Shown: positions 32,516 to 64,000, counted from the stretch's first letter. The stretch is DNA of 64,000 bases from Takakia lepidozioides (GCA_030704615.1 CM060732.1:57474001-57538000); one strand, 5' to 3'. Numbers and translations are program-made. Notes: a model not told the origin generated them from the letters alone.

Positions 32516-35500
32516 CTAGTCTTTTGGATCTGGTAATGAATACATTTCAACATGAGGAGGTCCTGAAACATCAGTGTGACTGGCAAAAGATAGGTAGACA
32601 TTCCATGCTAGAGCTACCACGTTGGCAAAGGCTACCTGCAACCACCCCCACAAACCTTTACCCATTATTACTGGATCTGTCTTCGGCTGATGTCCCTTCC
32701 TTTCTGCACAGAACCTACCTCCTGCCTTCTTCCCAGGTGAAAGTTCCTTCCAGCAGAAACAAAAATGTCTTTTTTTCTCTCAAAGATAAAATGAACGAAA
32801 ACAGCAGAGGTTGCAAGATGTTGCTCAACTAACAACATTGTTCTTTTCACACGCAACAGAGGCATCAAAGCATGGCCCTGTTGGGTGGACCGTACATCTA
32901 AGCTTGAAGCAATGCAATGATGCATGGTTGCCAACTGACAACATCATACCCTGGTTCGAGGGCAAAGAAGCCCTCTACTGTTTCAAAAGCATGCTGCACA
33001 TCGTGGGCTTGTGGTGAGGCGAAGTTTGATTTGAGCGAATCTATGTTGAAGATGTGAGAGAAAAAGAAAGAGATGTACTGTGGCCACAGGACGCTCAGAA
33101 AGAGATTTGAGACAGAATATTCAGAGGAGGCCTATGCAACAGTAGGACAACAAGAGACCTAAAAAGAGCACATAAGATAGAGGTGTGAGATGGAGACCTG
33201 AAGCTGTTGGGGAATGAAGAGAAAATTGATGAACTGGAATGGGATCCATAGTTTCCAGTTTGCTAAAACTGCGGCGCCCCAATCCTGCATTCCACATTAT
33301 GCACAACATGCCCTTAGTCCCTATCAACCATCAAAGTAGTATATCACTGTGCTAGCCGATCAGTTTGACCTCATCAAGCAATAGAACTAATATAACATCT
33401 GCATGGAAACCAGCTATTATTTATTCAATACTTTTTCCAGGAAAGGGGCAGAGCCCAGATAATTCAAATGACTGGCCATCAAAGCCCCAGAGGATCTCTT
33501 ACCTGCTGAAGCTTTGGGCCAATGTCAGAGGCCCGCCCCTCCAATGTCAACAGCGCCGTGAAAAAGACTGCAATAAATGCAGGTGAAAAGACAAACTGCA
33601 ACCACATTTGATGAATTATACACCAGTACAATCTCTCTCTCTCTCTCTCTCTCTCTTTGGCATTCCGTCCTTAAGCTCCCGACGAGATGAATTCAAGGTC
33701 AGATGGTGGGGTCAGCTGCAACATATGCCCAACACCAGATATCCTAAGTTAATCGACTCTATATCTTGGAAACAGGACCGCCCTGTCAAACAGGCTAAGT
33801 CCTGGCAGAAGAGAGTAGAAGAGATCCTCAAGGACCTGGACCTGGATCCGCAAGTCTTGACCCTGCTGGATAAATCTGACTTAGAGGCTGTAGTGTCCTC
33901 AGCAATGTCTGTTGCCATGAGATTGTCTGATGAAAATGAAGTTAGGCAGAAAACTTCCCTGAACTAATTTCCAGTCTGTGACATGGGGGAGGACATCTTG
34001 GATGACCTCAAGGGTCTACCCACTCTCGGCACTAGACTGAAATTTAAACTCCGGGCAGGAAGCCTACCTTTGAACAGCAAACAGAAGCAGAGAGGAAAGG
34101 GAGAGTGCAATTGCCCGTTGTGTGGGCAATCTGAATACAGTATTCATTTTCTGATACACTGTCCGGGGTTCTCTCACCAAAGAGACGCTCTCTTCAAATC
34201 TATTAAGGGAATTGTGCCTGTACCCCTGTTTACCAACTTTGAAAGTCTCGAGGCTGAGCCAAAAGCCCAGGCCCTCCTGAGGCCTAGTTTTTGGGCAAAT
34301 CACACACAGCAGATTGATGCTTGTGTGAAGGGATTTCTAGAGGATATCTGGAAAACCCGGATTAATTCTTTATATGGAGGTAAGTCTTACTACCAACGTC
34401 AGCCCCTGACAGAGGTAGGTTCTGTCCCTTTTGTTCCCGCTCAAACTGGGCGCGGGGTCAATGGCCACAAGGCTACGGCAAACATCGTCTTATGAGTACA
34501 ATGTCTCTCTCTCTTTTTCCTCGAATGTGGCCAGGTCCCTACTTGCCACTAAAAGTTGTCTGATCCACTTATTCTGTTGAGAACTTTGTCCACATTAGAA
34601 CCCAAAAACAGAATGACTAATTAGGATTTCCCTAGGTCATACCCTACAGCAGCTGCCCACTATTTTAGAAGACCCTGCTAATCTTCTCATTTGGAAGACG
34701 AGCACCAAGAGCTGAAGGGGCAGTCACCTTACTCCTGGACTATGTCTACAATCAAGGTGCTCATCCCGGCTCTGTGAGCACATTGAAGTGCATAGAATGC
34801 CACTCAGTATGGCTACACAAAGAGAGGACGATGTGAGTTTACATCAACTTGACTAGCCCTACTCTGAATCTGTGAATACTATTGCAAGCTTAGGGCTTCT
34901 GCATGTGACCTTGCTTGAGTACATGGCTCTAGTAACACCTTGGGTGCTTACTGATGAGGAGATCACCACCCCTCCCTCTGGAGAGTGGGCTCACATAGGT
35001 GCTTACTGCGAGCTCTGATTACTACAGGCTGAAATGGCTGTAAGTACCTCCCTTCTCTTTGTTAGTATGACCTGCTACAGTGATGACATCGATAACAAGT
35101 GTGAGGTAATTTAATCCTGAGGTTCTACAGACCTTCACCTTCTATTGTTGCTGGGTTTGCTACTAAGGGCAAGAGACAAAGGGAAGTTAAAGCTTTGAGC
35201 ACTTCCAGATATTGGATGACCAAGTGTGTATGCATTCTTTTTTAAATCCACAATCACCTTTGATTGATGGTGGAAAGACGTAAGAGCATGTGGAAACACA
35301 GAAGGGTTTTAGCCTAAGGATTCAAACTATACATGAATTTGCTACCGTTGCTTCTGCTTCCGAGGATATGAAAGTGACAAGCAAACCTTTTTTGCTGTGA
35401 CCTGCATATCTAGTGTGCATCTGATTGCCACTTAGAACACCCTACATCTTAAGATATGCCAGAGGGAGGTATTGAGGCAAATTTCAGTCGAGGCACTTTA

Positions 35501-38500
35501 ATGATGCCTATGAAAAAAGAGGTGGACACGACATGTATTTCATGTTTCTTTGTCTAGCATGGACATGCTTTGTCACTCTCTGTCTGAGCACCTGCACCTC
35601 TGTTCAGCAACTTCTAAAGTCTCGAGGCTGAGACTAAATTCCTGGCACTGTTGGGGAGGCAGATCACACACAGCAAATTGATGCTTGTGTTAAAGGCTTT
35701 CGAGAGGAAATCTGGAAATCAAGAACAAATTGTTTATATCAAGTGAAGTTCCCACTACTGGAGAGAGCCCCTCAACGGAGATAGTATCTGTTCCCTCATG
35801 TTCTGGGCGCTGTAAAGATACTTCACAACAACCGGACAAGGTGTGGCTTTCTTGATGTACGATGTGAAGAAGTTTGTCTGTTCTGAGAATGTGGGCTCTC
35901 CCTGTCAGTGTCATGATTTGGTATTTCTCCTAGTGCTTACTAGGTACTCGGGAGGGTCAACTTGGTCTTATGACGCCGTGTTTATATCCATGGCTGTTCA
36001 GCTTTTCTCACAGACCAATCCGAGATCACCTGACTGTAGACAACCAGCACACACAAGAGGTCCTTTTGGGTTGATGGTCAGTTGAATCCTCTGTGAGTGA
36101 AAGAAAAGCTAGCTGCTTTCAAGACACAAGGTCGAGGACAACGTAGTGAGGGCACCTTCTTCAGTACATTTCAGCCTTTTTTACCCTCTTATCAAAGTTA
36201 TCCCCAATTAATCATGTTCAACTCTGCAAGTTCGCCCGTTCGGTGCATGTATGGTGGTTTGGAGAGTATTGACATGTTACTGCCAATGTGGCAATAGGAA
36301 CGTATCCAAAACCGGTAACAGACATGAGGAAAAGCTTTGGAAGGAATATTTTCCACACCCAGAAAATGGTGGGACAAATGAGGCAAAAAAGGTGAATGCC
36401 TCTTAGATTACAGAGAGAAGCAGACAACAAGATGCAATGCAAAGACTTGTTTGAGATTCTCATCCTTTCTCTCCCCAGCACGTTTTTGAAGTCTTGGGAG
36501 CAATTCAGCATAGGCACTAGTGTGTGATAAGTAAGGTTGGTAGCTGTCATTGTCAGCTGCTAGCAGCAAAGCGACGATCTATGTGCAGAGGCAGGGATAG
36601 CTGAAGGCGCAGGGATATACTGTCGGTCCAAATTCATCCAAGAGGGCCAGATTCCAAGCACAAAATTACCAACGATTCCCCATGGATAGCTACAAGAAAC
36701 CTGCATGGTAGATGGTAAACAGGAAACAGCAGCCGCGGCGGCACAGTTGATAAAATCAGGCACCTTTACAATGACCACAGCTAAGAGGACCAAGAGAGGG
36801 AGTCCACAATGCCTCTTCTGGCACTTCTGGGCATGTGAGGATGCTATGTGAGGCAGAGCGACTCAAAGAGGCTCTACAGACTTTAAAGCCAAGGCGACGT
36901 TTCGGCAGATTCACATACTTATGTCTGTCTCTTGCATAATTGCATCAAGATGAAAGGCCTGGAAGCTGGAAAGCAGGTGCATGCTCACATTATCCAAAGT
37001 ACATTCCAAGCCAAACATTTTTCAACACAACACTCTTGTCAACGTGCATTTTAAGAGCAGGAGGATCACGGATGCTCACCAAGTGTTCAACATAATGTCT
37101 GAACACAGTTTGATCACATGGAATATTATGATTGCCGGATTATCAAGCATGGATGTGGTAAGAATGCCTTGGAGACATAATAGGGTAAGGTGTGCAAGCC
37201 TGGCAGCGCTGGGAAAAGGCCAAGAGGTTCATGGTGTTTTCATCAAAGCACAAACCATACCAGATGTCCTTCTGAACACTCTGCTGATGAAAATGGATGC
37301 CAAAGGCAGAAACATCAAGGATGCAAAGGGAGTGTTCGACAATATGGCTGAACAAGATGTGGAGTGCAATGTCACGGGATATGCCCAGCATGGGTGTGGG
37401 ATGGAAGCTTTGTAGACCTATTGGGTGAAGCCCGACTACATCACATTTGTTTGTGTTTGCCATGTGTGTGAGCCTGGTAGCCCTGGAAAGGACAAAGGTG
37501 ACATTGTCAAAGCTGGAAATGTACTGGATGTTATTCTGAACATTGCCCTAGTGGCCATGTATGACAAATGTGGAATCATGGGCATGTGCAAAGAGAGCGT
37601 TCAACCTTGTGGGCAAAGTTGATGTGGTGTACTGGAGTGCCATGATCGCAGGATGTGCACACCAGGGTGGGATGGAGGCTTCGGAGACCCATGAGCAAGT
37701 GATGTGGGAACGGGTGAAGCCCAACCACATCATGTTTGTTTGGCTTTGCAATACGGTAAATGTCTTCTACAAACATTCTTTAACCCATTGCCACAAAACA
37801 GCCCGACTTTCAGTTATCTGCAGCTCTGTAGCTATCAAGCTCATCATCTCAACCATAACCAAGCTCATCAAGCTCAACAGTGGGAAGAAATCAAGACACA
37901 TAGTCCTTGGACTTTCTTGTGTGCACCGGAGGCCAGCCAGCTTGATTCACGAAGACCAACAAAGAACAAGAATGCACTCATAAGACGTTGTTTGCCGTAG
38001 CCTTGTGGCCATTGACCCCGCACTCAGTTTGAGCGGAACACAAAGGTACAGAAACTACCTTTGTCAAGGGCTGAAGCCGGTGGTATGACTTACCTTGGAA
38101 CAGACTATTCATCCGGGTTTTCCAGATATCCTCTAGAAATCCCTTCACACAAGCATCAATCTGCTGTGTGGTTTACCCAATAACTAGGCCCCAAGGTGAT
38201 GATGTTCAAGATGATTAGACACGTAATCAGAATCACCTAATAATTCTTGCACAAAAGTGTACCCATCCCTTCGATTGATAGTACATGCAGCTTATTTCTA
38301 TGATCAATGGTCTTGCAATAATCTCTCCCTCTGTCTCGCGCCAGGTTTGTTTATCTTGAGATCAGAGCAAACTATCGTGGGCACTCTCAAAGATGGCTCG
38401 CCCTTGGCAGAGGCAAAAGAGCACCAGAAGTGCAGAGCGTTTGAGGTTTTTCTTGACAGCTCGCAACTTGTAGGTAGTTCGATTTAAGTTACTGCAGTCC

Positions 38501-41500
38501 TGATCATGAAGACGACAGCAGGGAGAGCTGTAGGTCGCAAGGGCAGGGCAGGTTCATCGGGCGCCACTGCTTTCAGCAACACAAGTTATCTACAAGAGTT
38601 GATTAATTAAACAACGGAGGTGGGCATATTATTGAAGGAGTCTCCTTCCTAAAGACGGTTTCTCAAAGCTTGATGTCCACTGCAAGACTTTGCACACTCG
38701 TATGTATGCAAACACCTGACATAATGCGTGTATGTGCCAAGATGTTGTCCTGACCATTTCAGACAGATCGACCAGTGAAACCACAGGTCTACTAGATCCG
38801 TTCAAACTTCGGATGGATTGTCAGTTCAAAGCACACACCACTTCTGGGTGGCGATCATGTCATTCGAGATAAGACTCACCGAGGTTGTCTAGAAGTTAAG
38901 AAGCTATCTGATGTTATCTAGATGTCAGCGTTGTCTACTGACAGTGGATGCCTACTACGTTTTGGAGGGCACACGGTCACAAGGTGGCAGAAACAGTCAC
39001 CTTAGAAGGCTCACATGGCCAACAAGTGGAAGGTCGACAGAAGCAGGTCCAGATGTCGTATGAACAAATGTTGTTTCGCGATTGGCAGCTGGAGGGAGTT
39101 TGCATTCGACCACGACCTCAAAATCGGAGACCAGCTTGTCTTCACTCTCATTTCACACTCTTGTTTTACCGTTCGAGTGTTTGACAAGTTTGGCAAACGA
39201 GGGCAGGTAACTCCACCACCTAGGGAGTATCCTTGGATCCATATTGGGGTGGATTCATGGCTCCGTAGGATTGGTATCCACCGCTGGGCCAAAAACTTGC
39301 CAAAGCGCAAGTACACAATCGAGACTGAATCCGGCCTCAAAACATTGTGGAAGCCACATACTAATGTTCCACACAATGTAACTAACATGATGAAGTCATT
39401 CCCAACGCATGTTTCCAGCAGGGGTTCCGTTTCCGACGACGCGAGGGCTACGGTGGTAATGGAGGGCAGGGCATACGCACGGCAGATCAAACCCCCAATT
39501 TCATGCTGATTATGAGAGACCCTCAAGTCCACGGCAAGTCTTCGTTGGTGGGTTCTTACTTTTCACCATCCTGGTTCTTTAGCAGCATTAGAACTTGATT
39601 GAACAGAAGCGCATTGCGTGATCAATAGATTAAATTGTCTCTGAGCATGCATGTATGGCAGGAAATACCTTTCGAATTCATCAAGGAATCCAGGATGCCA
39701 CCAAAGAAGTTTAGTATGCGTCTGAACAATTGCACTGGAAAAGTGTGGAATCCTCAATGCGCAGGGGAGCACCTTACAGTCGGGAGCTGGACTCTCAAGC
39801 TTGGGCACAATTTGCACTCCACCAGTGCCTTGAGGAAGGAGATGTGTTTTTGAGCTAACCCATAACACTGACTTCACAACACCAGTCCGCATCTTCCCGT
39901 TAGTGGAAGTCACTGAAAATGCTGGATGGGACAGCCATCTTGCAAACAAATCTATCAACAACGAGGTTTAGTGTTCTCACTTTCATCCGGCCTTTGTGCG
40001 CAGCTGATCATGACTACACTTTAAAAGCAGTAGCCAGGTGACAGACATGGCTTTGCACACTACCACCTCTAAGTCAGATTTATCCAACAGGGCCAAGACT
40101 GCTTAGATTCAGATCCAGAGAATCTCTTCTCTGGTAATGACAAGAAATTATGGTTGGCCCTTCAACGTTTGTACAAGCCGCAAAACGGTCAGCAAGTACA
40201 AGCGCTGAAGACTACTAAAGGTGCAGTGGTGACTTCATCGGTTGACATTGTCAAAACCTTTGAAACTCACTACAGTATCCTTGGCAGAACTTCTAGGTCT
40301 AACAGTGAGGGGTCTTCTGCTGAATGGAGGGACACAGTTGGAAAAACTGTTCCTATGATTCAAAACAGCCCTGATGAACTGGAGTATATTTCAATGGCTT
40401 ATAATGCTCCCATTAGTTCTTCTGAGATTGTGGAAGCAATTGAACATTTAAATGGATATAAAGCTGGTGGACCTGATGGTATTGTCAACGAGCTTATCAA
40501 ACACGGTGGCGATCCCATGATAGAGGCCCTAGTTCTCCTCTTTAACCTTATCTGGAAGACTGAAATGATCCCCTTTTGCTGGCGACAGGGGGTCATTGTC
40601 AATCTATACAAGAAGGGTGACAGAGAAGAACCGGGGAACTACCGTGGCATCACGCTCCTCAATGCTGTTGGCAAGACATTCTGCAGAGTTATAAGTACTC
40701 ATCTCGAGGTTGATCTGGAGTCTAGAGGTTGTTTCCACGAAGGCCAAGCTGGCTTTTGGCGAAACAGGGGCTGTGTGGATCATATCTTCACTCTAAGCCA
40801 GATTATCCAGGGAAGGAAAAAAGAAGGGAAACCCTCTTATGTCTTTTTCCTGGATGTCAAAAAGGCTTATGACACAGTGTGGAGAGATGGCCTATGGTTC
40901 CGCCTCTGGTCTTGTGGGATCAAGGGAAAGATGTGGAGAGTTGTCCACAACTTGTATGCTCACACCAAAAGCTGTGTCACTGTTAACGGACAGAAGTCCA
41001 ACTTCTTTGACATAGACCAAGGTGTAGCTCAAGGATGTACTCTCTCCCCTCTGCTCTTCAATGTTTTCATCAATCAACTCCTCGAGGATGTGGAAAGTGA
41101 GGGATTTGGGTTAAGGGTGGGTGATACCACCATACCAGCCCTTATGTTTGCGGATGACTTCGCAGGCATAGGGGAGACTCCAACCAATCTCCAGGAGTTG
41201 ATTGATTGTGCGAAGAGATACTTTGATCTTTGGGGGCTAGAGGCTAATGTCAGCAAATGTGCAGTGGTAGCATTCAACGACAGAGGAGAGGGAGGAAGTG
41301 ATCTTAAGTGGCAGTGGGGTAGCCAAGAGATCCCGGTCCTCCCTTCCTACACTTACCTGGGCGTTGAGTTCTCCTCCAATTGTAATTGGGATGCTCATAT
41401 CCGGAAAGTTGTTCAAACTGGCAAGGGCAAAGCTCTGGGGCTCACTAAATTTTTCCACTGCAGAGGGGTCAACTCTGAGGTTAAGAAAACCATGCTTTGT

Positions 41501-44500
41501 CGCGTTATTAGACCTGCCTTGGAGTACGGATCTGCTATATGGGTTGATAACTCCAACCAGGCTAAGTATCTAGAATCCATTCAAGTGAGGGTGCTTAAGG
41601 AGTGTATGTCAGCATGCTCCAAAACAGCCAATGTGGCTGTTCGGGGTGAGTTTGGCATTCCGTCCTTAAGCTCCCGACGAGATGAATTCAAGGTCAGATG
41701 GTGGGGTCAGCTGCAACATATGCCCAACACCAGATATCCTAAGTTAATCGACTCTATATCTTGGAAACAGGACCGCCCTGTCAAACAGGCTAAGTCCTGG
41801 CAGAAGAGAGTAGAAGAGAACCTCAAGGACCTGGACCTGGATCCGCAAGTCTTGACCCTGCTGGATAAATCTGACTTAGAGGCTGTAGTGTCCTCAGCAA
41901 TGTCTGTTGCCATGAGATTGTCTGATGAAAATGAAGTTAGGCAGAAAACTTCCCTGAACTTGTTTCCAGTCTGTGACATGGGGGAGGACATCTTGGATGA
42001 CCTCAAGGGTCCACCCACTCTCGGCACTAGACTGAAATTTAAACTTCGGGCAGGAAGCCTACCTTTGAACAGCAAACAGAAGCAGAGAGGAAAGGGAGAG
42101 TGCAATTGCCCGTTGTGTGGGCAATCTGAATACAGTATTCATTTTCTGATACACTGTCCGGGGTTCTCTCACCAAAGAGACGCTCTCTTCAAATCTATTA
42201 AGGGAATTGTGCCTGTACCCCTGTTTACCAACTTTGAAAGTCTCGAGGCTGAGCCAAAAGCCCAGGCCCTCCTGAGGCCTAGTTTTTGGGCAAATCACAC
42301 ACAGCAGATTGATGCTTGTGTGAAGGGATTTCTAGAGGATATCTGGAAAACCCGGATTAATTCTTTATATGGAGGTAAGTCTTACTACCAACGTCAGCCC
42401 CTGACAGAGGTAGGCTCTGTCCCTTTTGTTCCCGCTCAAACTGGGCGCGGGGTCAATCGCCACAAGGCTACGGCAAACAACGTCTTATGAGTACAATCTC
42501 TTCCGCCAGGACTTAGCCTGTTTGACAGGGCGATCATGCTTCCAAGCTATAGAGTCGATTAACTTAGGATATCTGATATTAGACATGTTGCAGCTGACCC
42601 CACCATCTGACCTTGAATTCATCTCGTCGGGAGGTAAGGAAAGGATGCCAAACTCACCCCGAACAGCCACATTGGCTGTTTTGGAGCATGCTGACATGCA
42701 CTCCTTAAGCACCCCCACTTGAATGGATTCTAGAGACTTAGCCTGGTTGGCGTTATCAATCCATACTGCAGATGCATTACTCCAAGGCAGGCCTAATAAC
42801 GCGGTAAAGCATGATTTTTTTAACTCAGAGTTCATCCCTCTGCAGTGGAAAAATTTAATGAGACCCAGCGCTTTGCGCTTGCCAGATTGCACGACTTTTT
42901 CAATATGTGCATCCCAATTACAGTTGGAGGAAAACTTAACACTAAGGTATGTGTAGGAAGGGAGGACCAGAATCTCTTGGCTTCCCACTGCCACTTCAGA
43001 TCACCTCCTCCCACCCCTCGGTCGTTGAATGCCACCACTGCACATTTACTGACGTTAGCGTCTAGACCTCAAAGGTCAAACTCTCTCTTCGCCCAATCAA
43101 TCAACTCCTGGAGATTGGAAGGAGTCTCCCCTATGCCTGCGAAATCATCCGCAAACATAAGGGCTGGTATGGTGGCATCACCCTCACTTTCCACATCCTC
43201 AAGGAGTGGATTGATGAAAACATTGAAGAGAAGAGGGGAGAGGGTACATCCTTGAGTTCTATGTCAAAGAAGTTAGACTTCTGTCCATTAACAGTGAGAC
43301 AGCTTTTGGTGTGGGCATGCAAATTATGGACCACTCTCCACATCTTTCCCTTTATCCCAGATGACCAGAGTCGGAGCCATAGACTCTCTCCACACTGTCA
43401 TACAAGAGAGGGGGGCAATGCACTCGAGAAACTTTTGCTGGAAGCTAGAACGTAGACCCTGCACTTGGTGAAGATGAAGCAGAACATTACAAAAAGTGGG
43501 GACTGCTGCACAGCAGTGTGATGTCCCTTTGAAAATGAGTGAGAGAGAGAAAGAAAGTTCTGAGCGAGAGATAAAGACCTGATCAAGGACAACCCGAATA
43601 AAGGTGCCTGGGACCCCGCCTGCTGTCACCAACTTGCTTAAAGCCAAGTACCTGCAGCCACGGATGCCATTCTCTAGCAAAATGGGTCAACAAATGGGTC
43701 AACACATCTTAAGCCTAAAACATCCAGACCCATCTATCGTCGATACAAACCCCCTCAATCGATACTACCCCTCCCAGAGTAAGTTGCAACAGTGGAAAAC
43801 TCAGCCTATGTTGCAGAAAGCACTGACGGAAAATCTCGTTAGAGGATTGCTGTGAGTGTTGGTTTGAATAGGGGAGTTGAGGCCTACTACAAATCAGAAT
43901 GCTAAATCCAGCATTGCTAATCCTCTGCTTGATGCATATGTGACACATCTGTCCTTCCTGTACTGCAGTCAACTTCAAATTGGTCACAGGGTTGAGAGAA
44001 GACTTACTTAAGCTTTAGAATCACATTTAACAACATCAAGTTGATGCAAACTCTGCTTATCCCGTCTTAAAACCAGTGGGTGTGTTTGTTGGGAGGCAAA
44101 ATCTATAGTCTAATAGAAGTAGCTGAGTGCAAAGTGGCACATTTCAACTAATAGAAAACAATTTATGCTTTAAGGTAGGGTTATCCTTACCAAGTATGTA
44201 GAGTGGGGCCAACCAGCATAAACCCAATGAAGGTGATCAAAGCTGTTCGTTTCAATTCCACCTTTCCTTTTTTCTCAACAACTAACTGCCATTATACCCC
44301 CCCCAAGACAGACATTAATAAGTTGACATAATCTGCAGCCCCAAGTAAACCCAGGAGAGTAGACTGTTACCAACCTAACAGAAACCTACAATTAAATGAG
44401 CTAACCTACTAAGCCTTGATACAAATCTAGAGGCATGTGAGAGAGAGGTAACCTGACAGAAAATATCTCCCAAAAAGTTGAGGATGGCTGCTGTGATGGC

Positions 44501-47500
44501 TTTGGTTCGCACGGGATACTGGTCAGTGAGTGCCAAATACCTGAAAATTCCACAAACACCCGTACACTAAGGAGCACGGCAAAAACGAATAAACCCACAA
44601 AAAGACCATCAACAGTGCAGGGAGGACTAGAGAAGACACAAGAAGAGGCAAAGAATCATCGACATTGAAATATGGTGTTAAGAGTTAGGTTCAACTATTT
44701 CCCCAAATCTTGAATAAAAAATGGAAGGCACTCAGAACCTATAAGGAGTCACAAAGTGGGTGCATCAGAAACATGCAGAATATTATAAGGAGGACTGCTT
44801 CTGTCCATCATCTTTCTCTATCTCTCTGTTGTTCCGCCCGAACTGGGCACAGGGTCTATGGCCACAAGGCTACGGTAAATAACGTCTTAAGAGTACGTTC
44901 TCATATGTTCTCTCTCTCTGTCTCTCTCTCTCTCTCTCTATTCTCTCATCTCTCAATGGCCACAAGGCTACGGCAAACAACGTCTTATGAGTACAATCTC
45001 TCTCTATTCATTTTCTGATACACTGTCCGGGGTTCTCTCACCAACCGACAGGGCCATTATTACAAAAGTAATATGCAGTCTCCCGTCGGCCTGGGACAGT
45101 GTGAACAACTCTCTTCAAATCTATTAAGGGAATTGTGCCTGTACCCCTGTTTACCAACTTTGAAAGTCTCAAGGCTGAGCCAAAAGCCCAGGCCCTCCTG
45201 AGGCCTAGTTTTTGGGCAAATCACACACAGCAGATTGATGCTTGTGTGAAGGGATTTCTAGAGGATATCTGGAAAACCCGGATTAATTCTTTATATGGAG
45301 GTAAGTCTTACTACCAATGTCAGCCCCTGACAGAGGTAGGTTCTGTCCCTTTTGTTCCCGCTCAAACTGGGCACGGGGTCAATGGCCACAAGGCTACGGC
45401 AAACAACGTCTTATGAGTACAATCTCTCTCTCTCTCTCATAAGGAGGACTGCTTCTGTCCATCATCTTTCTCTATCTCTCTGTTGTTCCGCCCGAACTGG
45501 GCACAGGGTCAATGGCCACAAGGCTACGGCAAACAACGTCTTATGAGTACAATCTCTCTCTCTCTCTCTCATAGGGGAGACTCCTTCCAACCTCCAGGAA
45601 TTGATTGATTGCGCGAAGAGATACTTTGATCTTTGGGGGCTAGAGGCTAATGTCAGTAAATGTGCAGTGGTGGCATTCAATGACAGTGGAGAGGGAGGAA
45701 GTGATCTTAAGTGGCAGTGGGGTAGCCAAGAGATTCCAGTCCTCCCTTCCTACACATACCTGGGCGTTGAGTTTTCCTCCAACTGTAACTGGGATGCACA
45801 TATCCAGAAAGTTGTTCAAACTGGCAAGGGCAAAGCGTTGAGTCGCACTAAATTTTTCAACTGCAGAGGGATTAACTCTGAAACCTTGCTTTGCCGCGTT
45901 ATTAGACCTGCCTTGGAGTACGGATCTGCTATATGGGTTGATAACTCCAACCAGGCTAAGTATCTAGAATCCATTCAAGTGGGGGTGCTTAAGGAGTGCG
46001 TCAGCATGCTCCAAAACAGCCAATGTGGCTGTTCAGGGTGAGTTTGGCATCCCTTCCTTAAGCTCCCGACGAGATGAATTCAAGGTCAGATGGTGGGGTC
46101 AGTTGCAACACATGTCAAACACCAGATACCCTAAGTTAATCGACTCTATGTCTTGGAAACAGGACCGCCCTGTCAAACAGGCAGGGAAGAGAGTAGAAGA
46201 GATTCTCAAGGATCTGAATCTGGACCCGCAAGCCTTGACCTTGCTGGATAAATCTGACTTAGAGATGTAGTGTCCAAAGCCATGTCTGTTACCAGAAAAT
46301 TGTCTGATGCAAATGAAGTTAGGCAGAAAACTTCCCTGAACCTGTTTCCAGTCTGTGACATGGGGGAGGATATCGTGGATGACCTCAAGGGTCTACCCAC
46401 TCTCGGCACCAGACTGAAATTTAAACTCAGGGCAGGAAGCCTATCTTTGAACAGTAAACAGAAGCAGAGAGGAAAGGGAGAGTGCAATTGCCCGTTGTGT
46501 GGGCAACCCGAAGACAATATTCATTTTTTGATTCACTGTCCGGGGTACTCTCACCAGAGAGAAGCTCTCCTCCAATCTAGAATTGTGCCTGTACCTCTGT
46601 TTACCAACTTTGAAAGTCTCAAGGCTGAGCCAAAAGCCCAGGCCCTTCTGAGGCCTAGTTTTTGGGCAAATCACACACAGCAGATTGATGCTTGTGTGAA
46701 GGGATTTCTAGAGGATATCTGGAAAACCCGAATCAATTCTATTTATAAAGGTAAGTCTTACTACCAATGTCAGCCCCTGACAGAGGTAGGTTCTGTCCCT
46801 TTGGTTTCCACTCAAACTGGGCGCGGGGTCAATGGCCACAAGGCTACGGCAAACAACGTCTTATGAGTACATTCTCTCTCTCTCTCAAGTTCCGCTCAAA
46901 CTGGGCGCGGGGCAATGGCCACAAGGCTACGGCAAACGTCTTATGAGTACATTCTCTCTCTCTCAAGCCAAAGGCCCAGGCCCTTTTGGGGCCTAGTTAT
47001 TGGGAAAACAACCCACAGCAGGTTGATGCTTGTGTAACGGGATTTCTAGAGGATATCTGGAAAACCCAGATCAATGGTTAATTGTTTATTCCAAGGTAAG
47101 TTTTACAACCGGCACCAGCCCCTGACAGTTCTGTCCCTTTGTGTTCTGCTCAAACTGGCTGCGGGGTCAATGGCCACAAGGCTACGGCAAACAACGTCTT
47201 ATGAGTACATTCTCTTCCAAGTATAGTTTTGCCTTTATCCACTTGTCCTTCCTCACGTTTTTTCCATTAATCAGATGGACAGACGGCAATAGATAGAATG
47301 CTTAGACTGAAGGACACAGATCCCTGGATACTAGTGATTGGGCTTTTAAAGTTCAGTGATTGTAAGACCTTCCTCATGCCAACTGGAGACCTATCTCAAT
47401 TCTGAGGGTTTCTACATGCCAACTTGACTTCAATAAAAGGCTTGAGTTGGTGGCTCTTCAATGTGCATGATCTCTTCACTTGCACCTTTCCATGCCACTA

Positions 47501-48956
47501 AGGTGTGTGGTAAGAAGAGAAGCAGTTCAGGCTATATTCCTCAAGGAAGGAAGGTGCTATCAGGATGGGTGAAACTAGACATTGACAGACATGGCCTCTT
47601 CCTCAAGCAACACTCGGGTAGAGGGCATGAGCTAATAGGTTTTCCTTACCACTTCCTAGTGCATTGATCTATATGCTAGAAATTTGCAAGGCTATTATGT
47701 TTGATTGTGATTTAGACTTAGCTCCATTGTATGTTTCTTGGTGTGGATAACAACTAGGTGAGGATGACGCAGCCTGTTATTCCTCTCTAACCACCAACCA
47801 TTATCTGTGGCTATGGATGAGGATGGGAGCAGGTGAGGCTTCTATGGCAACAAAGTCTCATGAGCATATTCCCTCTAGAGTGAAATTTAAACTCAGGGTG
47901 GGGAGTCTACCTTTGAACAATACACAGATAGAGGGGAGTGCCTGATATGCTGGCGGTCTGAAGACAATATCCATGTTCTCATACAATGTCCGTGGTATTC
48001 TCAGCTGCCCTGCTCAGGACCATCAAGAACATAGTCCCTGCACCTCTGTTCACCTACTTCCAAAATCTCAAGGCTAAGCCTAAAGCCCTTGCCTTGTTGG
48101 GGTATCTCACACACGGCAGATTGATAATTGTGTGAAGGTCTTTCTAGAGGAAATCTGAAAAGCACGGACCCATTGTTTATAGTTTATACCAAGGTAAGTC
48201 CCACTACTGGAGGGCTTGGAGTAAGCCCCTCACAAAGGTACTGTCTGTTCCCTCTTGTCTCTATCCTGCATGAAAGAGATGGGGCTCGTCAACTAGTGCA
48301 CGTATTCCATTTCCATCTCCTCATGGCTGTCTGTATGAAAATAACACACGTGCACATTTGAGTTTAAAAGCCCCCTTCGCGACTGCATTCCTTCATTGCA
48401 ACGTCCCAGACGATGATTTTGGCCAGACCATCAGAAACGGAAGGCGAAGATACAAAGAAGTCAGTCTATAGGCATAAACAAAAGCATAAAGTGCAGGTAC
48501 ACGGGTGTACCAAGACAGGAGACCGGTTGGATGCGGCAATTTCCCGTTATTCTCTCCATTGTCCTCTGACCCATCATCGCCCCCTCCACCACCGCCTCTT
48601 CCAATATCCCCCCCTCCACCTCCGTCACCCCCACCTCCTGTTGCTGTAGCAAATCTCGCAACCGGCAATGCTCTCGTCCCCATTGGCTCCAACCCTAAAC
48701 CTCTCCATAAAGAAAAGGCGCCGACTCTTTGGGAGTCGATGAGACCACCGTCGCCACATCCTCCCTCCTCAGCTATGGAGAAGACGGAGCTAGTGATGGC
48801 TTTCACTGATCGGCTAAATGAGACTGGTGAAATGGAAATGGAGATTTTAGTCGCACAGCAGCCAGCAACCTGCCCTAGAGCGAGAAAGGAAGACTTCGAC
48901 GATGGGGGAGCCACAAGCGCAGAGAACAGGAATGGACTCAACTTCTTCACCTCCAT
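32516..48956 (-). CDS. Mpv17/PMP22 family membrane protein with transit-peptide-like N-terminus and Gly-rich linker; seven exons
   Basis: In-phase GT-AG exons: 48956-48511 (..GLLSW), 44540-44453 (YLALTDQYPVRTKAITAAILNFLGDIFCQ), 44285-44191 (..KRTALITFIGFMLVGPTLHTW), 43651-43579 (YLALSKL..RVVLDQ), 33595-33503 (FVFSPAF..LLTLEGR), 33284-33198 (DW..ANWKLWIPFQFINF.FIPQQLQ), 32635-32516 (VAFANVVALAWNVYLSF..*). Confidence 0.9.
33656..34514 (+). mobile_element. 5'-truncated LINE copy (family A), flanked by CT runs
   Basis: Nearly identical to 41651-42500. Premature TAA near 33965. C-terminal CPLC..H..C motif. Preceded by AGTACAAT(CT)12 and ending TGAGTACAATG(TC)n. Confidence 0.92.
35590..35800 (+). 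mobile_element. Old degenerate 3' fragment of LINE family A
   Basis: Recognisable cacacacagcaaattgatgcttgtgt..ggaaatctggaaa similarity to the family 3' region. Confidence 0.7.
36880..37750 (+). pseudogene. PLS-class PPR pseudogene inside intron 4 of the Mpv17/PMP22 gene
   Basis: HNTLVNVH..ITDAHQVF, TWNIMIAG, GQEVHG, DAKGVFDNMAEQDV, GYAQHG.G.EAL, KPDYITFV, ALVAMYDKCG, DVVYWSAMIAG, broken by frameshifts and deletions. Confidence 0.85.
37975..38190 (-). mobile_element. Short diverged 3' fragment of LINE family A, reverse orientation
   Basis: Reverse complement of the family terminus (ctcataagacgttgtttgccgtagccttgtggccattgacccc). Confidence 0.85.
38506..39900 (+). pseudogene. Multi-B3-domain (REM-like) pseudogene nested antisense in intron 4
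   Basis: SFLKTVS..RL|WMPTTF..VTLEGSHG / NKWKV..GSWREFAFDHDLKIGDQLVFTLISHSCFTVRVFD, and a later EIPFEFIK..GKVW..GSW repeat. Frameshift near 39018, in-frame stops, and GT-AG introns retained (38700-38944). Confidence 0.75.
40040..43400 (-). mobile_element. Older antisense copy of LINE family A, split into 40040-40132 and 42498-43400 by the young copy
   Basis: Both flanks are reverse-complement matches to adjacent parts of the family sequence (..KSWRK | EILKDL..LDKSDLE..). Confidence 0.85.
40133..42500 (+). mobile_element. Young 5'-truncated LINE (family A, RTE/RTEX-like) with an open 778-aa RT plus C-terminal Cys/His ORF; endonuclease missing
   Basis: KAGGPDG, NYRGITLL, QAGF, FLDVKKAYD, GVAQGCTLSP, MFADD, YTYLGV, CPLC..HFLIHCP. 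The stop is followed by GTACAATCTC. Clade assignment is an inference. Confidence 0.93.
44785..47215 (+). mobile_element. Head-to-tail array of seven 5'-truncated family A LINE copies separated by CT runs (intron 1 of the Mpv17/PMP22 gene)
   Basis: Terminal motif ggccacaaggctacgg at ~44860, 44958, 45384, 45514, 46834, 46917 and 47172, each followed by gagtac..(ct)n and then the next fragment. Confidence 0.92.
47875..48260 (+). mobile_element. Old degenerate family A-related LINE 3' fragment
   Basis: tgaaatttaaactcagggtggggagtctacctttgaac and gaagacaatatccat..tgtcc match the RLKFKLRAGSLPLN..EDNIHF..CP region. Confidence 0.75.
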
Positions 48957-53332: not shown

Positions 53333-56300
53333 TCAACGTTTCTTCCGCTTTTGAGGTCGCCCTTCGAACGCTGCAACTGCCTCGGATGCGTTTCCCATTT
53401 CTGAGGCACGCACCCAAGATGCCTCCACAAGATGATAGCCCTTCCATTTGACGAGATACTCCGTTTCTCGGTTCTTGAACCTCCTCGACTTAAGTATTGC
53501 CTCCACCTCGTACTCGGGTTCATTTTCATGATCCAACAGCATAGGTGGCGGACGCAACACTTGCTGCCGATTCGGACGTGCTTCATCTTTGAAGTAAGGC
53601 TTCAAAAGGGAGACATGGAATACTGGGTGCACCTTGCTGTTTGCCGGCAGCTCCAATTCATACACATCCTCATTCATAACCCTCCGAATGCGAAAGGGAC
53701 CCGCATACGGAGGTACGAACTTCGGACTCACTTCCGGAGGTAGTCGAAAATTCTTGATGTTCAACCAGACCTCTGTGCCTGCCTCAAACTTCACTTCCCT
53801 CCGCTTCCGATTCGCCTGCCTTTCATACCGTTTCCTAGCTTTGGCAATGTTGTACTTTGCGAGCTTCAACAAACGCTCGCGTTCTTCCAGCACCGCCGCT
53901 ACTGCCGGTTCCTCAACGTCCTGGGCGGCCCAACTTGTCGGCACCAGAGGTGCTTTTCCATAGACCAACACAAAAGGGGAAATTCCCGTCGCGGAGTGTT
54001 CTGTGTTATTATAACAGAACTCTGCCGCGTCTAAGTGTTCCATCCAGTCTGATTGGTCTGCCGACACGTAATTCCGCAAGAATTGCTTCACTACGGAATT
54101 CACTCTTTCCGTTTGGCCGTCCGTCGTAGGTCGGAAGGCGGTGCTCATCTTCAGCCTCGTCCCCATCTTCTTCCAAAGTGCTCTCCAAAATTTACTCGTA
54201 AACTTTGGGTCGCGGTCCGAGACAATATCCTTCGGGACTCCATGATGCTTTAAGACGTGGGCGAAGTAAAGTCGCCCTGTCTCCTGCGCCGTTGCCGTCT
54301 CCTTGGTGGGGATGAAATGGGCCATTTTACTGAACCTATCTACCACCACCATGATTGCATCGAATCCTTTTGACAGCGGCATAGCAGTCATGAAATCCAT
54401 CGAGACGCTTTCCCAAGTCCCCTCTGGAATCGGCAAGGGTTGTAACAGCCCCGCTTGCTTTTTGTACTCGCTCCGGTTTTGTTGGCATGTGGTGCATGTC
54501 TTGACATACTCCTCTGCCTCCTCCCTCAGTTTGGGCCAGAAATACTCTTTCTTCAAGAGTGCCGCAGTGCGCTTGGCTCCGCCGTGGCCCGCAAGCAGGC
54601 TATCATGGCATTCTCTCAAGAGGCTATCTCTGATCCCTCCCTTTGGCACATAGAGACGTTTTTGCTTATACCGGAGCAGTCCTTTTGCAAGTGGAACTGC
54701 GATTTAACCCCCATTCTCAAGTCCTGCATCACGCGCTTTGCCAGCTCATCCTTCCGGCAAGCCTTCCGGATCTTCCTTTGGAGCGCCGTCTCGCCCTTGT
54801 CCAACAAGAGCTGCTGCTTTCTACTTAAAGCATCGGCCACCACATTGTCCCGTCCCGGTTTGTACTGGATATCCACGTCGAACACTGCCAAAGTATCTTG
54901 CCACCTAAGTTGTTTTGGGGACAACTTGGGCTGCGTGGCAAAATACTTCACCGTGACATTGTCCGTGAACACCTTCACTGGGTTGGAACCAACATAGTGG
55001 CGCCAGAGTTCAAGGCAATGCACCACCGCCTTCATCTCTTTTTCGTGCGTCGGCCACCGTCGCTCCACTTCATTCAGTTTCTTACTTTCGTAAGCCACTG
55101 GTCGTCCATCTTGCATAAGTACACCCCCAATCGCGAAGTCCGATGCATCTGTATGAATCTCAAACGGACGATCGAACTCCGGGATTTTCAAGACTGGAGC
55201 TTCCGTCATCCGCTGCTTCAATTCAGCAAAAGCTTGGCCACAAAATGTGTTCCATACCCAGACTTTGGATTTACACAGAAGGTCCGACAGCGGCCCCGCG
55301 ATCTTGGCGAAATTTCTCACATACTTTCGGTAATAGGAGGCGAGTCCTAGGAAGGATCGCACTCCCGGGACCGAAGTCGGAGGCTCCCAGTCCAAGATCG
55401 CCCTCACCTTTCTGTCATCCATTTTGATCCCATCCTGTGTAATCACATGCCCCAGGAACTCCACTTTTGTGACCCCGAATTCGCACTTTGAAGCTTTGGC
55501 ATACAGCTTCCCGTCCCGCAATTTTTGGAACACCCTTTTGAGGTGCTCCAGGTGCTCCTCCTTTGTTTTCGAGTACACCAAGATGTCGTCGATGTACACG
55601 ATCACAAAGTCATCCAACCACTCCTGGAAAAGGCTGTTCATCAGCGTGCTAAATGTCGCTGGTGCATTGGTGAGCCCAAAAGGCATCACCAAGAACTCAT
55701 ATGAACCATACCTTGTCCTGCACGCGGTCTTCTCCTCATCTCCTTCTGCCACCCGAATTTGGTGATAGCCGGAGCGCAAGTCGATCCGGCTGAAATACTT
55801 CGCTCCTGCCAACCGATCGAAGAGGTCGTCGATCCTTGGCAAAGGGTACCGGTTTTTGATAGTCACCTTATTCAAAGCCCTGTAATCGACACACATCCGC
55901 AGCGTCCCATCCTTCTTGTCTGCGAATAGCACCGGGGCTCCGTAAGGTGACTTACTCGGCCGGATGTACCCCTTTGACATTAGATCCTTGAGCTGAGTCT
56001 TCAGCTCGACCAACTCTCTGTGGCTCAACCGGTAGGGCGCCTTGGCAGGCGGTTCCGATCCCGGTATCACCTCAATCTTGTGGTCAACTCCTCTTCGCGG
56101 TGGCAAGCCGCTTGGTAAATCCTCCGGCATCACATCCTGGTATTTCTCCAAAATCCCTTTGATCCAATCTGGGCTCGGCTCCCCATCGCCTTCTCCTTTC
56201 ACTTCTCTAATGTAAAGCAAAAACTGGGACTCGTGTGCCTCCTCCACGGCCCACTCCTTTGCTGACAGAAGGTTTATTCGCCCTCCCACGGATTTTGGCG

Positions 56301-57891
56301 TTTCCGACACTCGTAAAACTTCACCACCATTCCCACATGGCAGCGTGACTACTCTCTTGCGGCCATCTATGACCGCTCCGGATTTGCTCAAAAAGGTCAT
56401 CCCCAAAATGAGATCCACTCCATCGATCTCGCAGATAGTGAAGTTCTCACGTCCCTCCCAACTCCCCAGTTGAAGAGGAACATCAAACGCCAACCTTGTC
56501 GCCAACTGAGGTTCTCCTTTGGCAGAGCGCACCTCAATAGAGGCCCCCACGTCACTTGTCGGGAGTCCCAACTTTCGCGCCGCCGCCGGCGTCATGAAGG
56601 AGTGCGACGCTCCTGTGTCCACCAACAACGACACGTTAGTTCCGGATATTATCCCATCCACGAACAATAACTGACTCCCTTTACGCAGGGCGCCAGTTTC
56701 CTGATACAACTCACAAGAATAGTTGCCTACCTTGCAAGTCCTGGCGACTACCGCTTCCACCAAACGACTGATGGTATCTTCCGACAGCTCCGTGGTCGCC
56801 CGAGTCATGTTCAATTGCCGGGGCTTCGTGCACTTCTTGGCCATGTGCCCGGGCTCCCCGCAATTGAAACACACTCCATCAAAGGTCGCCTTCTGTCCGC
56901 CATAAGCCGCTCCACCCGCTTTTCCTTTCGAAGCACCGGGTGCCGCCTTGACGTGTGAAGGCCCTCCCTTCGATTTCCACGTGCCATTTTCGCCGCGTGG
57001 CCTATCCCACTTCTTTTCCGGTCGGGAGGAGTCACCTTCCCGCCGGGTCTTCTTGTGGTTCAGCTCCGTACGGCCTTGTCTCTCACCCCTAGGGACATCC
57101 GAGAAACATTCAGCTCTCTCAATTGCCTCGTTCAAAGTCTTGGGTGGCTTCTCCTCCAACTTCCGCCTAGCCCATGGGGCCAGTCCCGCCACAAAGTTGA
57201 AGACCATTTCTGGTTCCGCCATGTCCGCGACTTCGAGCAACAGCACATTGAAAGCCTGGACATACCCCCGAATGTCATCTGTTTGCTTCAAATTCCTCAT
57301 CTTGTCCCGGGCAAGCCAGGATGCGTTGAGGGGCACAAACTGTCTCTTCATCAATTCCTTGAACCCACTCCAGTTCAAGGTTTCCGGGCTTGGGCCTCGG
57401 TCGTGAAGGCGTTTCTGCCACCATTGTTGAGCATAGCCCCTCAAATAGGTGGGAGCCACTTCCACCCGATCCTCGTCACTCAACTTGGCCGCCCGGAAGT
57501 ACTGCTCTAGCTCCAGGAGCCAGGTGTTGAGTGCCTTCCGGTTTCGAACGCCCTCAAAGGTGCCGGGTTCCTTAGGCTTCACCTTAAACTTTGCCTTAGT
57601 GGAAGTGGCATTAGCCGCCTTCAACACGTCTTTCAACGCCCCGCCAAACTGCGCCAACAACCCTTCCCAAAAGGCTGCTGGCATGGGAGGCATCTCTTGG
57701 TTTGTCGGAGCTCTCGAGGATTCCTCGGGCTCCGACTCCTCGGATTCCTCCCGCTCTTGAGCGGCCTCGTTTTCGGAAACATTCATCGCTTCCTCAAACG
57801 GCCGCCTCGGTGACACGTCGCCCCCATCGGGCTCACCGGGATCATCATCTTTTGGGCCGTTCCGCTTTCGCTTCGGCTTGCCCGACCCCAT
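53333..57891 (-). CDS. Gag-Pol polyprotein with one frameshift near 54685
   Basis: [44 protein letters not shown], integrase HHCC and SMDF/SDRD/TDGQTE, GPF, chromodomain [17 protein letters not shown]. Confidence 0.95.
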
Positions 57892-57930
57892 GATGAGGCC
57901 GATCCCAAGGACGATCGCGTACTGAACTCT

Positions 57931-57944
57931 AAGCTCTGATACCA
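57931..57944 (-). promoter_or_regulatory. Primer-binding site for initiator tRNA-Met
   Basis: TGGTATCAGAGCTT lies 2 nt inside the 5' LTR boundary. Confidence 0.93.
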
Positions 57945-57946
57945 AA

Positions 57947-62812: not shown

Positions 62813-63913
62813 TTAAGGGGGTGGGGGCAATTTCTTGTGCAGGGGGGCTGCCTTCATATCTGAGTCGTATGGATGCGGTGTCCAACGGCGTGTTCCTTGA
62901 GGTGTGGTCAGCCAGCTGTTGTGCCCTGTCAGTTCAGTCCAGTCATTATGGTAAGAGCATGCAGGCATTACAGGGTTCGTAAATCCAAGTGTATACAACG
63001 TGAGCTGATAGTTGGAATGGAAAGCACGAGAGATAGCATATGCAGAAGGTAGAGTTACTTCCCTTGGTTGGTTGTCAGGAGTGTTTGGTACAACTACAGC
63101 AAAACCAGCTCTGAAGATGTCGCCATGGACCTCTTTGCCCTTTTCCAGATCTGCCAGGGCAGTGTGCAGAGTGACATTTGGTACAACTACAACAAAACCT
63201 GCAAGTGTCGCATTCCACGACACCACAACTCGTTCAGCCATAGTGTCAAACACTCCCTTTGCATCGTCGATGCACCCACATTTTGCATACATGTCCACCA
63301 GGGTATTGTTCAGAATGACAGTTGGTACAATTCCAGCTCTGAAGATGTCGCCATGGACCTCTTTGCCATTTTTCAGATCCAGGGCAGTGTGGAGAATGAC
63401 ATTTGGTACAACTGCAGCAGGACCTGCAAGTATTGCCTTCCACGACACCACATCTTGTTCAGCCATAGTGTCAAACACTCCCGTTGCATCGTCAGTGCAC
63501 CCACATTTTGCATACATGTCCACCAGGGTATTGTTCAGAATGACAGTGGGGACAATTCCAGCTCTGAAGACGTCACCATGGATCTCATTGCCCTTTTCCA
63601 GATCTGCCAGGGCAGTGTGTAGAATGACATTTGGTACAACTGCAGCAGAATCTTCAAACATTGCATTCCACGACACCGTATCTCGTTCAGCCATAGCGTC
63701 AAACACTCCCTTTGCATCCTCGATGCACCCACATTTTGCATACATGTCCACCAGGGTATTGTTCAGAATGACAGTTGGTACAATTCCAGCTCTGAAGATG
63801 TCGCCATGGACCTCTATGCCCTTGTCCAGATCTGCCAGGGCAGTGTGCAGAATGACATTTGGAACAACTACAGCTTTGATGATGTCATCAGGTACAGCTT
63901 TGCGCTTTTCCAT
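62813..63913 (-). CDS. PLS-type PPR-derived ORF made of ~3.4 tandem 228-bp units; possibly a pseudogene
   Basis: Repeated VVPNVILHTALADLEKGKEVHGDIFRAGIVPTVILNNTLVDMYAKCGCIDDAKGVFDTMAERDVVSWNA. No E or DYW domain. The frame stays open to the window edge. Confidence 0.65.
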   Translation of the reverse strand: MEKRKAVPDDIIKAVVVPNVILHTALADLDKGIEVHGDIFRAGIVPTVILNNTLVDMYAKCGCIEDAKGVFDAMAERDTVSWNAMFEDSAAVVPNVILHTALADLEKGNEIHGDVFRAGIVPTVILNNTLVDMYAKCGCTDDATGVFDTMAEQDVVSWKAILAGPAAVVPNVILHTALDLKNGKEVHGDIFRAGIVPTVILNNTLVDMYAKCGCIDDAKGVFDTMAERVVVSWNATLAGFVVVVPNVTLHTALADLEKGKEVHGDIFRAGFAVVVPNTPDNQPREVTLPSAYAISRAFHSNYQLTLYTLGFTNPVMPACSYHNDWTELTGHNSWLTTPQGTRRWTPHPYDSDMKAAPLHKKLPPPP

Positions 63914-64000
63914 GGCTGCTAGGCTCTTGTGATGTGTCCGGGGACTATGGGTGATAAGCAGAGCTAAGTGAAACAGAGACGAGTTGAGGCATAGAGGCAA

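Follow-up and report, generated by a model that had tools for sequence, protein, structure and literature searches.

The window, a stretch of 64,000 nt from Takakia lepidozioides, contains several 3' ends of one LINE family stacked at 44785-47218, together with further copies of that family. It also holds a plant-specific B3-domain fragment, PPR and MYB genes and a chromovirus. The features other than LINE copies were as follows.

1557-7932 (-), Myb/SANT domains in four consecutive long ORFs (625, 349, 423 and 385 aa) that probably form a single large regulator gene with several exons
36981-37983 (+), PPR fragments, degenerate-looking
39015-39509 (+), B3-domain fragment (E 4e-7), adjoining LINE copies
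44449-44545 (-), exon-like segment with AG/GT borders, encoding ..YLALTDQYPVRTKAITAAILNFLGDIFCQ (by eye)
48393-48956 (-), upstream ORF ending ..GLLSW beside a GT (by eye)
53333-57945 (-), Ty3/gypsy chromovirus, apparently intact; one ORF of 1109 aa (gag, protease, RT, RNase H) and a second of 438 aa (integrase and chromodomain)
62813-64000 (-), PPR ORF running off the window end

By eye, the segments at 44449-44545 and 48393-48956 resemble the start of a Mpv17/PMP22-type membrane protein gene, and Pfam gave no match for these candidate host exons on either side of the stack. If they belong together, the stack would lie in the first intron of this candidate gene and antisense to it; this placement is unproven, and so is the intron inflation that the earlier note had expected from the element.

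Seven co-oriented 3' ends in one array

Reading of the region 44300-47700 revealed seven stretches that share a terminal sequence of about 48 nt followed by TGA, GTACA(A/T)T and a CT run. A blastn comparison with the longest copy in the window (c5) as reference returned seven matches, all on the plus strand and all reaching the 3' end of the reference (44823-44902, 44953-45000, 45005-45426 and 45477-45556 for U1-U4; 45570-46876, 46892-46956 and 46966-47214 for U5-U7). The array thus consists of the following units.

44785-44954 (+), U1, the array founder: body to 44902; its CT-rich tail, about 52 bp to 44954, is degenerate
44955-45005 (+), U2: 42-nt 3' end to 44996, then (TC)4.5; 98% identity (blastn)
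45006-45438 (+), U3: 417-nt 3' end to 45422, then (TC)8
45439-45570 (+), U4: body to 45552, then (TC)9; 44-nt head and four derived substitutions in common with U1
45571-46886 (+), U5: 1.3-kb 3' part to 46872, then (TC)7; 91% identity (blastn)
46887-46964 (+), U6: 66-nt 3' end to 46952 with deletions of 1 nt and 3 nt, then (TC)6
46965-47218 (+), U7: 246-nt 3' end of an older subfamily to 47210, then TCTCTTCC to 47218

Every unit ends with the stop codon, GTACA(A/T)T and (CT)n, and only 0-2 nt separate the CT tail of one unit from the start of the next; unique DNA begins after TCTCTTCC of U7. The earlier note had described seven co-oriented 3' ends, each abutting the CT tail of the previous one, and both the direct reading and blastn bear this out. 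A 41-nt terminal motif of the family occurred eight times in the window with at most 3 mismatches, compared to 0 matches expected from shuffled sequences. The unit bodies measure about 118, 42, 417, 114, 1302, 66 and 246 nt from U1 to U7. The description of all units as variably 5'-truncated is correct for five of the seven, which have different breakpoints, but U1 and U4 begin at the same point.

The founder U1 is composed of a 44-nt head that has no LINE match and about 75 nt of LINE 3' end, the latter 83% identical to the young reference, and its tail is decayed and interrupted as compared to the pure tails of the inner units. Within that tail (44903-44954) we noticed ATTCTCTC and ATCTCTC pieces, which resemble the terminal 2-3 nt of the element joined to a tail and may thus be near-zero-length insertions similar to a mini copy found at 33625. 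The start of U2 coincides with the conserved hairpin module described below. U5 contains the end of the RT domain, the CCHC motif and the C-terminus, with the reading frame in three pieces. As a separate observation, about 64 bp in U3 (45045-45108) stand in place of 7 nt of the reference and include an inverted copy of the neighbouring ACACTGTCC motif; this piece has the appearance of a hairpin-templated filler or of a minor rearrangement.

Dispersed copies and the origins of the array units

The remaining family copies in the window are listed below.

33625-34514 (+), second stack: a mini copy, then the 848-nt copy c2 with its own tail
33625-33656 (+), the mini copy: only AGTACAAT and a 25-nt TC run
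33657-34503 (+), c2, the 848-nt copy, abutting the mini copy; 11-nt TC run at 34504-34514
35587-35870 (+), c3, old solo fragment, about 68-72% identity; CTCTCTGTCT immediately 5' of its start
37969-38193 (-), c4, a 3' end of 225 nt, solo and of the older subfamily; its tail is decayed and its 5' junction lacks CT
40131-42496 (+), c5, the longest copy, 5'-truncated, with RT and CCHC and without the endonuclease part
42497-43398 and 40041-40130 (-), older inverted copy split by c5, 87% identity
47876-48270 (+), c13, old fragment, about 68-74% identity, 660 bp 3' of the array

Twin priming had been considered for the minus-strand piece at 40041-40130 and was rejected, as this piece and 42497-43398 belong to a single older antisense copy that c5 has cut in two. 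A degenerate 3' end suspected by eye at 47800-47875 had no blastn support and was not counted.

To establish whether the units have a common origin, we compared the last 244 nt of the copies. U3 was 98.4-98.8% identical to the dispersed copies c5 (ending at 42496) and c2 (ending at 34503), and U5 was about 95% identical to the same two copies. U7 was only 85% identical to the young copies and 89.7% identical to the dispersed minus-strand copy c4, with which it shares several diagnostic changes. Since the units differ in subfamily and age, and each has relatives elsewhere, a single duplication or a single integration event is ruled out as the source of the array; for the same reason of differing subfamilies, a collapse or expansion artefact of the assembly is unlikely. 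Judged from these comparisons, at least five separate insertions are needed: one each for U1, U4 and U7, one for U5, which may include U6, and one for U3, which may include U2. Along the array, the age of the units rises from U2, the youngest, to U7, the oldest. This age order of six units fits a repeated landing of new copies in the long tail of the founder, which is suggestive only.

Tandem or segmental duplication of DNA, by unequal exchange or slippage between CT tracts, would produce similar arrays, and the earlier note had named identical breakpoints as its signature. Such a breakpoint does exist: U1 and U4 have the same start, an identical 44-nt head, found nowhere else in the window, and four derived substitutions in common. 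Similarly, the end of U5 together with U6 can also be read as an 80-bp tandem repeat with 1.9 copies and 93% matches. However, breakpoints and lengths differ in five of the seven units (42 to 1302 bp), and the array combines several subfamilies, members of which are also found dispersed in the window. Even for the two pairs, several details speak against duplication. The neighbours of U1 and U4 differ on both sides, colinear homology of the U1-to-U3 and U4-to-U5 blocks beyond the units was not seen at the array, and all six differences between U1 and U4 are U1-specific departures from the family consensus; U6 has the consensus base at a site derived in U5, in addition to its own two deletions. 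We therefore regard DNA-level duplication as highly improbable for the whole array, while it may have produced the U1/U4 pair. Alternatively, this pair may represent a short non-autonomous derivative or a retrocopy of the U1 locus.

The R2 enzyme is known to jump end to end between templates. If the reverse transcriptase of the present family, on reaching the end of its template, likewise moved on to the 3' tail of a second LINE RNA, truncated copies would be concatenated in one or a few integration events. The neighbours of like age (U2/U3, U5/U6, and the mini copy and c2) and a junction microhomology of merely 0-2 nt agree with this. Nevertheless, the array comprises at least three age or subfamily classes, whose identity to the young reference ranges from 82% to 98% and whose dispersed matches differ, and the whole array is therefore not the product of one event. 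We consider this explanation very unlikely for the array; template jumping may apply to some neighbours of the same age (U2/U3, the mini copy and c2). In general, local duplication or single-event concatenation may contribute in part, given U1/U4 and U5/U6, to a stack otherwise built by successive insertions.

Clade of the family and its 3' module

The coding capacity of the family was studied with c5. Its ORF (40154-42490, 778 codons) is intact and matches RVT_1 with E 1e-31. The stop codon TGA at 42488-42490 is followed by 7 nt and then by the CT run, so the very short 3' UTR and the simple-repeat end without poly(A) are real, as had been claimed. A close relative of the ORF was not found among the proteins searched: the best match was 52% identical and came from a metagenome contig (L001), and the named matches in the protein collection were all from Ectocarpus. 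One of these (P0011) was 39% identical over 93% of the length (E 2e-160), and its C-terminus matches the printed protein of the curated element RTEX-1_Ec32. That element has been classed as RTE-X because RTEX elements from Nematostella and Branchiostoma were its best match in Repbase (PMC12477816). For comparison, human L1 ORF2p scored E 1e-33 and R2 scored 1e-28; the match to L1 ORF2p is thus only at the level of the R2 match, and the best named kin are curated RTE-X elements. An L1/Tx1 assignment, suggested by the CCHC motif, had been dropped once the link to Ectocarpus RTEX-1 was found. In ESM Atlas only generic RT clusters were retrieved, and an exact 30-nt family motif had no match in the metagenome collection. 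By its similarity to a curated element, we file the family as a putative RTE-X-type non-LTR retrotransposon, which agrees with the RTE/RTEX-like plant LINE of the earlier note. Full-length relatives have an N-terminal AP-type endonuclease and an RT (PF03372/PF14529 and PF00078). No endonuclease domain or full-length copy was present within the window, and the longest copy starts between endonuclease and RT.

To characterize the 3' end, we compared the window element with five relatives: L001 and L076 (metagenome contigs), L002 (TARA ocean metagenome), L003 (Ectocarpus, CACKRE030000925.1) and L004 (a 1.1-Mb ENA contig). All five share with the window element a module that consists, in this order, of GCGNGGTCAATGG, a 4-bp hairpin (GGYN, a loop of 4-5 nt, N'RCU), a short spacer, (T/A)GAGTA and a simple repeat. 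The module was located at the following positions.

window, 42443-42497
L001, 3018-3072
L002, 4222-4272
L003, 4473-4535
L004, 4242-4290
L076, 888-936

The terminal repeat varies with the lineage, being (CT)n in the window element and (C)n, (TTA)n or (TTTA)n in the relatives. In a seven-row alignment, 92.9% of the cells could pair in the hairpin versus 21-46% with the partner slid, and one pair was seen as C-G, A-U and G-C. This gives modest support for a conserved 4-bp hairpin, considering the small sample and the short helix. For single copies, the folds of the final 85 nt did not surpass those of shuffles (z -1.0 to +0.4), and there was no Rfam match in the window. The module and the final codons of the ORF overlap, and this accounts for the conservation of the terminal ..VNG..A.. 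peptide. The stop codon precedes ATGAGTACA in L001 but is inside ATGAGTACA in the window element, and this difference in stop position points to selection at the nucleotide level. A degenerate pattern of the module had 122 matches in the loci examined; an RTE-X-like ORF was found upstream in three, one of them new (L076), and the remaining matches were chance hits.

The Ectocarpus locus contains a further structure of its own. Directly 3' of the (C)6 tail of the RTEX-1-like copy, at 4536-4660 of L003, there are two tandem units of about 57 bp that are about 85% alike, with (C)8 after the first. The arrangement looks like tail stacking of the kind seen in the window, here in a brown alga.

CT tracts, target choice and mode of insertion

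At eight of the family's 13 5' junctions, (CT)3 or more occurs in the 14 nt upstream, compared to a base rate of 0.6% outside the family in the window (binomial P about 2e-15). The CT enrichment at 5' junctions that the earlier note had set as a test for all genomic copies is evident here, but the CT of seven of these eight junctions belongs to family tails, and this sample says little on targets outside the family. The terminal repeats of young copies are (CT)4-12. On the plus strand of the window, all eight (CT)n tracts of at least 10 bp are family tails, and an unoccupied tract of this size was not found. This indicates that the element makes the microsatellites that are later used, in accordance with its proposed role as a source of CT microsatellites. 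The array and the stack at 33625-34514 likewise uphold the proposal that the (CT)n tail is the landing site for later copies, which gives rise to co-oriented head-to-tail stacks.

The nearest thing to an empty site in the window is the target of c5, which we rebuilt from both antisense halves of the split copy, aligned with uninterrupted copies in reverse complement. The element entered between ATCTCTTCT and (AC)TCTCTTCTGCC, in an imperfect TC-rich stretch of 20 nt. Two nt of the target are unaccounted for, and there is neither a target duplication nor a tail distinct from the target.

These data bear on whether the element is a strict (TC)n-microsatellite LINE of the Kibi kind, whose endonuclease recognises and cuts the repeat and which needs a pre-existing CT microsatellite. 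The strong CT enrichment at 5' junctions and the CT on both sides of copies inside the stacks would be expected from such an element, and LINEs of this kind are known in fish: Kibi elements of zebrafish and pufferfish are (TC)n-specific LINEs of the Tx1 clade (Kojima and Fujiwara 2004, cited from PMC3812793). However, the founder and solo copies U1, the mini copy at 33625 and c4 have no CT at their 5' side, and a CT repeat on both sides of the great majority of insertions including solo ones, the hallmark of microsatellite-specific LINEs such as Kibi, Koshi, Dong, Waldo and Mino, was not found in the window. Moreover, the only target that could be reconstructed is the imperfect TC-rich stretch and not a microsatellite. 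Since none of the long (CT)n tracts is unoccupied, the repeats appear to be derived from the element, and twelve shorter CT/AG tracts (8-10 bp, (CT)4 repeats included) that are not tails of the family are all unoccupied. The putative clade differs as well. Strict specificity of the Kibi kind is therefore unlikely in our view, a pre-existing CT microsatellite was not seen in the window, and the earlier term 'CT-microsatellite-directed' was too strong. We read the pattern as tail-guided priming at TC-rich, self-renewed sites.

Taken together, the likely explanation of the whole locus is an RTE-X LINE that stacks by tail-primed insertion into TC-rich sites and into its own tails. At its 3' end, the RNA of the element would carry the small hairpin module, then the stop codon and 7 nt, and finally (CU)n in place of poly(A). 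The endonuclease would nick the strand that reads AG-rich, and the freed AG-rich 3' end would pair with the (CU)n tail and prime reverse transcription. The orientation would be fixed because only the AG-rich strand can pair with (CU)n, and the same pairing would explain why no boundary separates tail and target, why the targets are TC-rich and how the site renews itself. Copying would mostly halt early, resulting in 5' truncation, and the cDNA end would be joined to the upstream DNA via microhomology of 0-2 nt. Every insertion would leave a fresh (CT)n at its 3' side, presumably a better landing site than the one just used, and later copies from different source elements would land in these tails, building a co-oriented head-to-tail stack along with CT microsatellites. 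The site preference could result from the pairing itself or from a loose preference of the endonuclease, rather than from strict microsatellite recognition, and the hairpin may play a role in insertion. A more far-reaching interpretation would be a true, independently evolved (TC)n-seeking plant LINE whose endonuclease itself prefers (GA)n.(TC)n, and which would at the same time be the main source of CT microsatellites, measurably drive intron growth in the lineage, have a short non-autonomous partner with a head of the U1/U4 type and keep, from brown algae to land plants, a 3' recognition hairpin encoded within the final ORF codons; as a whole, we find this combination conceivable, though doubtful.

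The closest known system is that of Ectocarpus, with RTEX-1_Ec32, RTEX-2_Ec32 and the non-autonomous RTEX-N1_Ec32 (PMC12477816). The curators' entries for these RTE-X elements give '(C)n 3'', a TSD that is 'C-rich' and 'can be present in tandem' (PMC12477816, supplement 3). Apart from the protein identity given above, the Takakia family has in common with them the CCHC motif followed by the terminal ..VNG..A.. peptide, a stop codon a few nt before a simple-repeat tail, tail-matching targets, tandem copies and the 3' module. It differs in having a (CT)n instead of a (C)n tail, and a land plant instead of a brown alga as its host. Green-algal RTEX families carry the same clade label and a simple-repeat 3' tail in place of poly(A), but with other motifs, such as (CA)n, (CAA)n and (CCAT)n, and target behaviour is absent from the table that lists them (PMC3747384, Table 3). 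LINE/RTE-X elements have been annotated in Marchantia (bioRxiv 10.1101/827881), and the literature searched, with incomplete coverage, contained no description of (CT)n tails or stacking in land-plant RTE-X.

Three other groups resemble the family in part. The self-insertion behaviour of Zepp is known, and in both cases copies accumulate in and beside one another in dense clusters. Zepp and Zepp-like LINEs of the L1 clade pile up in clusters in green algae (bioRxiv 10.1101/2024.02.27.582245); they have poly(A) and telomeric or centromeric clusters, whereas the present family forms short, ordered head-to-tail stacks via CT tails. LINEs of the RTE clade seed a share of the microsatellites in Lepidoptera (PMC2887409); they are of the single-ORF type, as is presumed for the present family, and likewise have an extremely short simple-repeat 3' UTR and many 3' partial copies. 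Their clade is RTE and not RTE-X, and PMC2887409 does not report stacking into tails. Finally, Kibi (PMC3812793) is an APE-type LINE, as is presumed for the present family, and is similarly associated with TC repeats on both sides of its copies; it belongs to the Tx1 clade, unlike the putative RTE-X family. In the window, the founder copies are without CT on their upstream side, and the element itself seems to produce the repeats. The 'novel system' proposed in the earlier note is thus not sustained. Tail-matching targets and tandem copies are on record for Ectocarpus RTE-X (PMC12477816, supplement 3), and microsatellite-targeting LINEs (PMC3812793) and the birth of microsatellites from RTE tails (PMC2887409) were already known.

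The locus is a clear case of behaviour known from related LINEs and reveals no new mechanism. It presents, in compact form, a self-renewing landing site in which the tail of a retrotransposon draws further copies, fixes their orientation and creates microsatellites. CT microsatellites and short 'orphan' 3' fragments of this genome are to be annotated as products of one LINE family, which will confound microsatellite markers and comparisons of intron size in the genome. The family adds a land-plant example to a rule drawn from brown-algal, green-algal and animal RTE/RTE-X elements, and a small 3' module of hairpin, stop codon, short spacer and simple repeat has been kept across very distant hosts.
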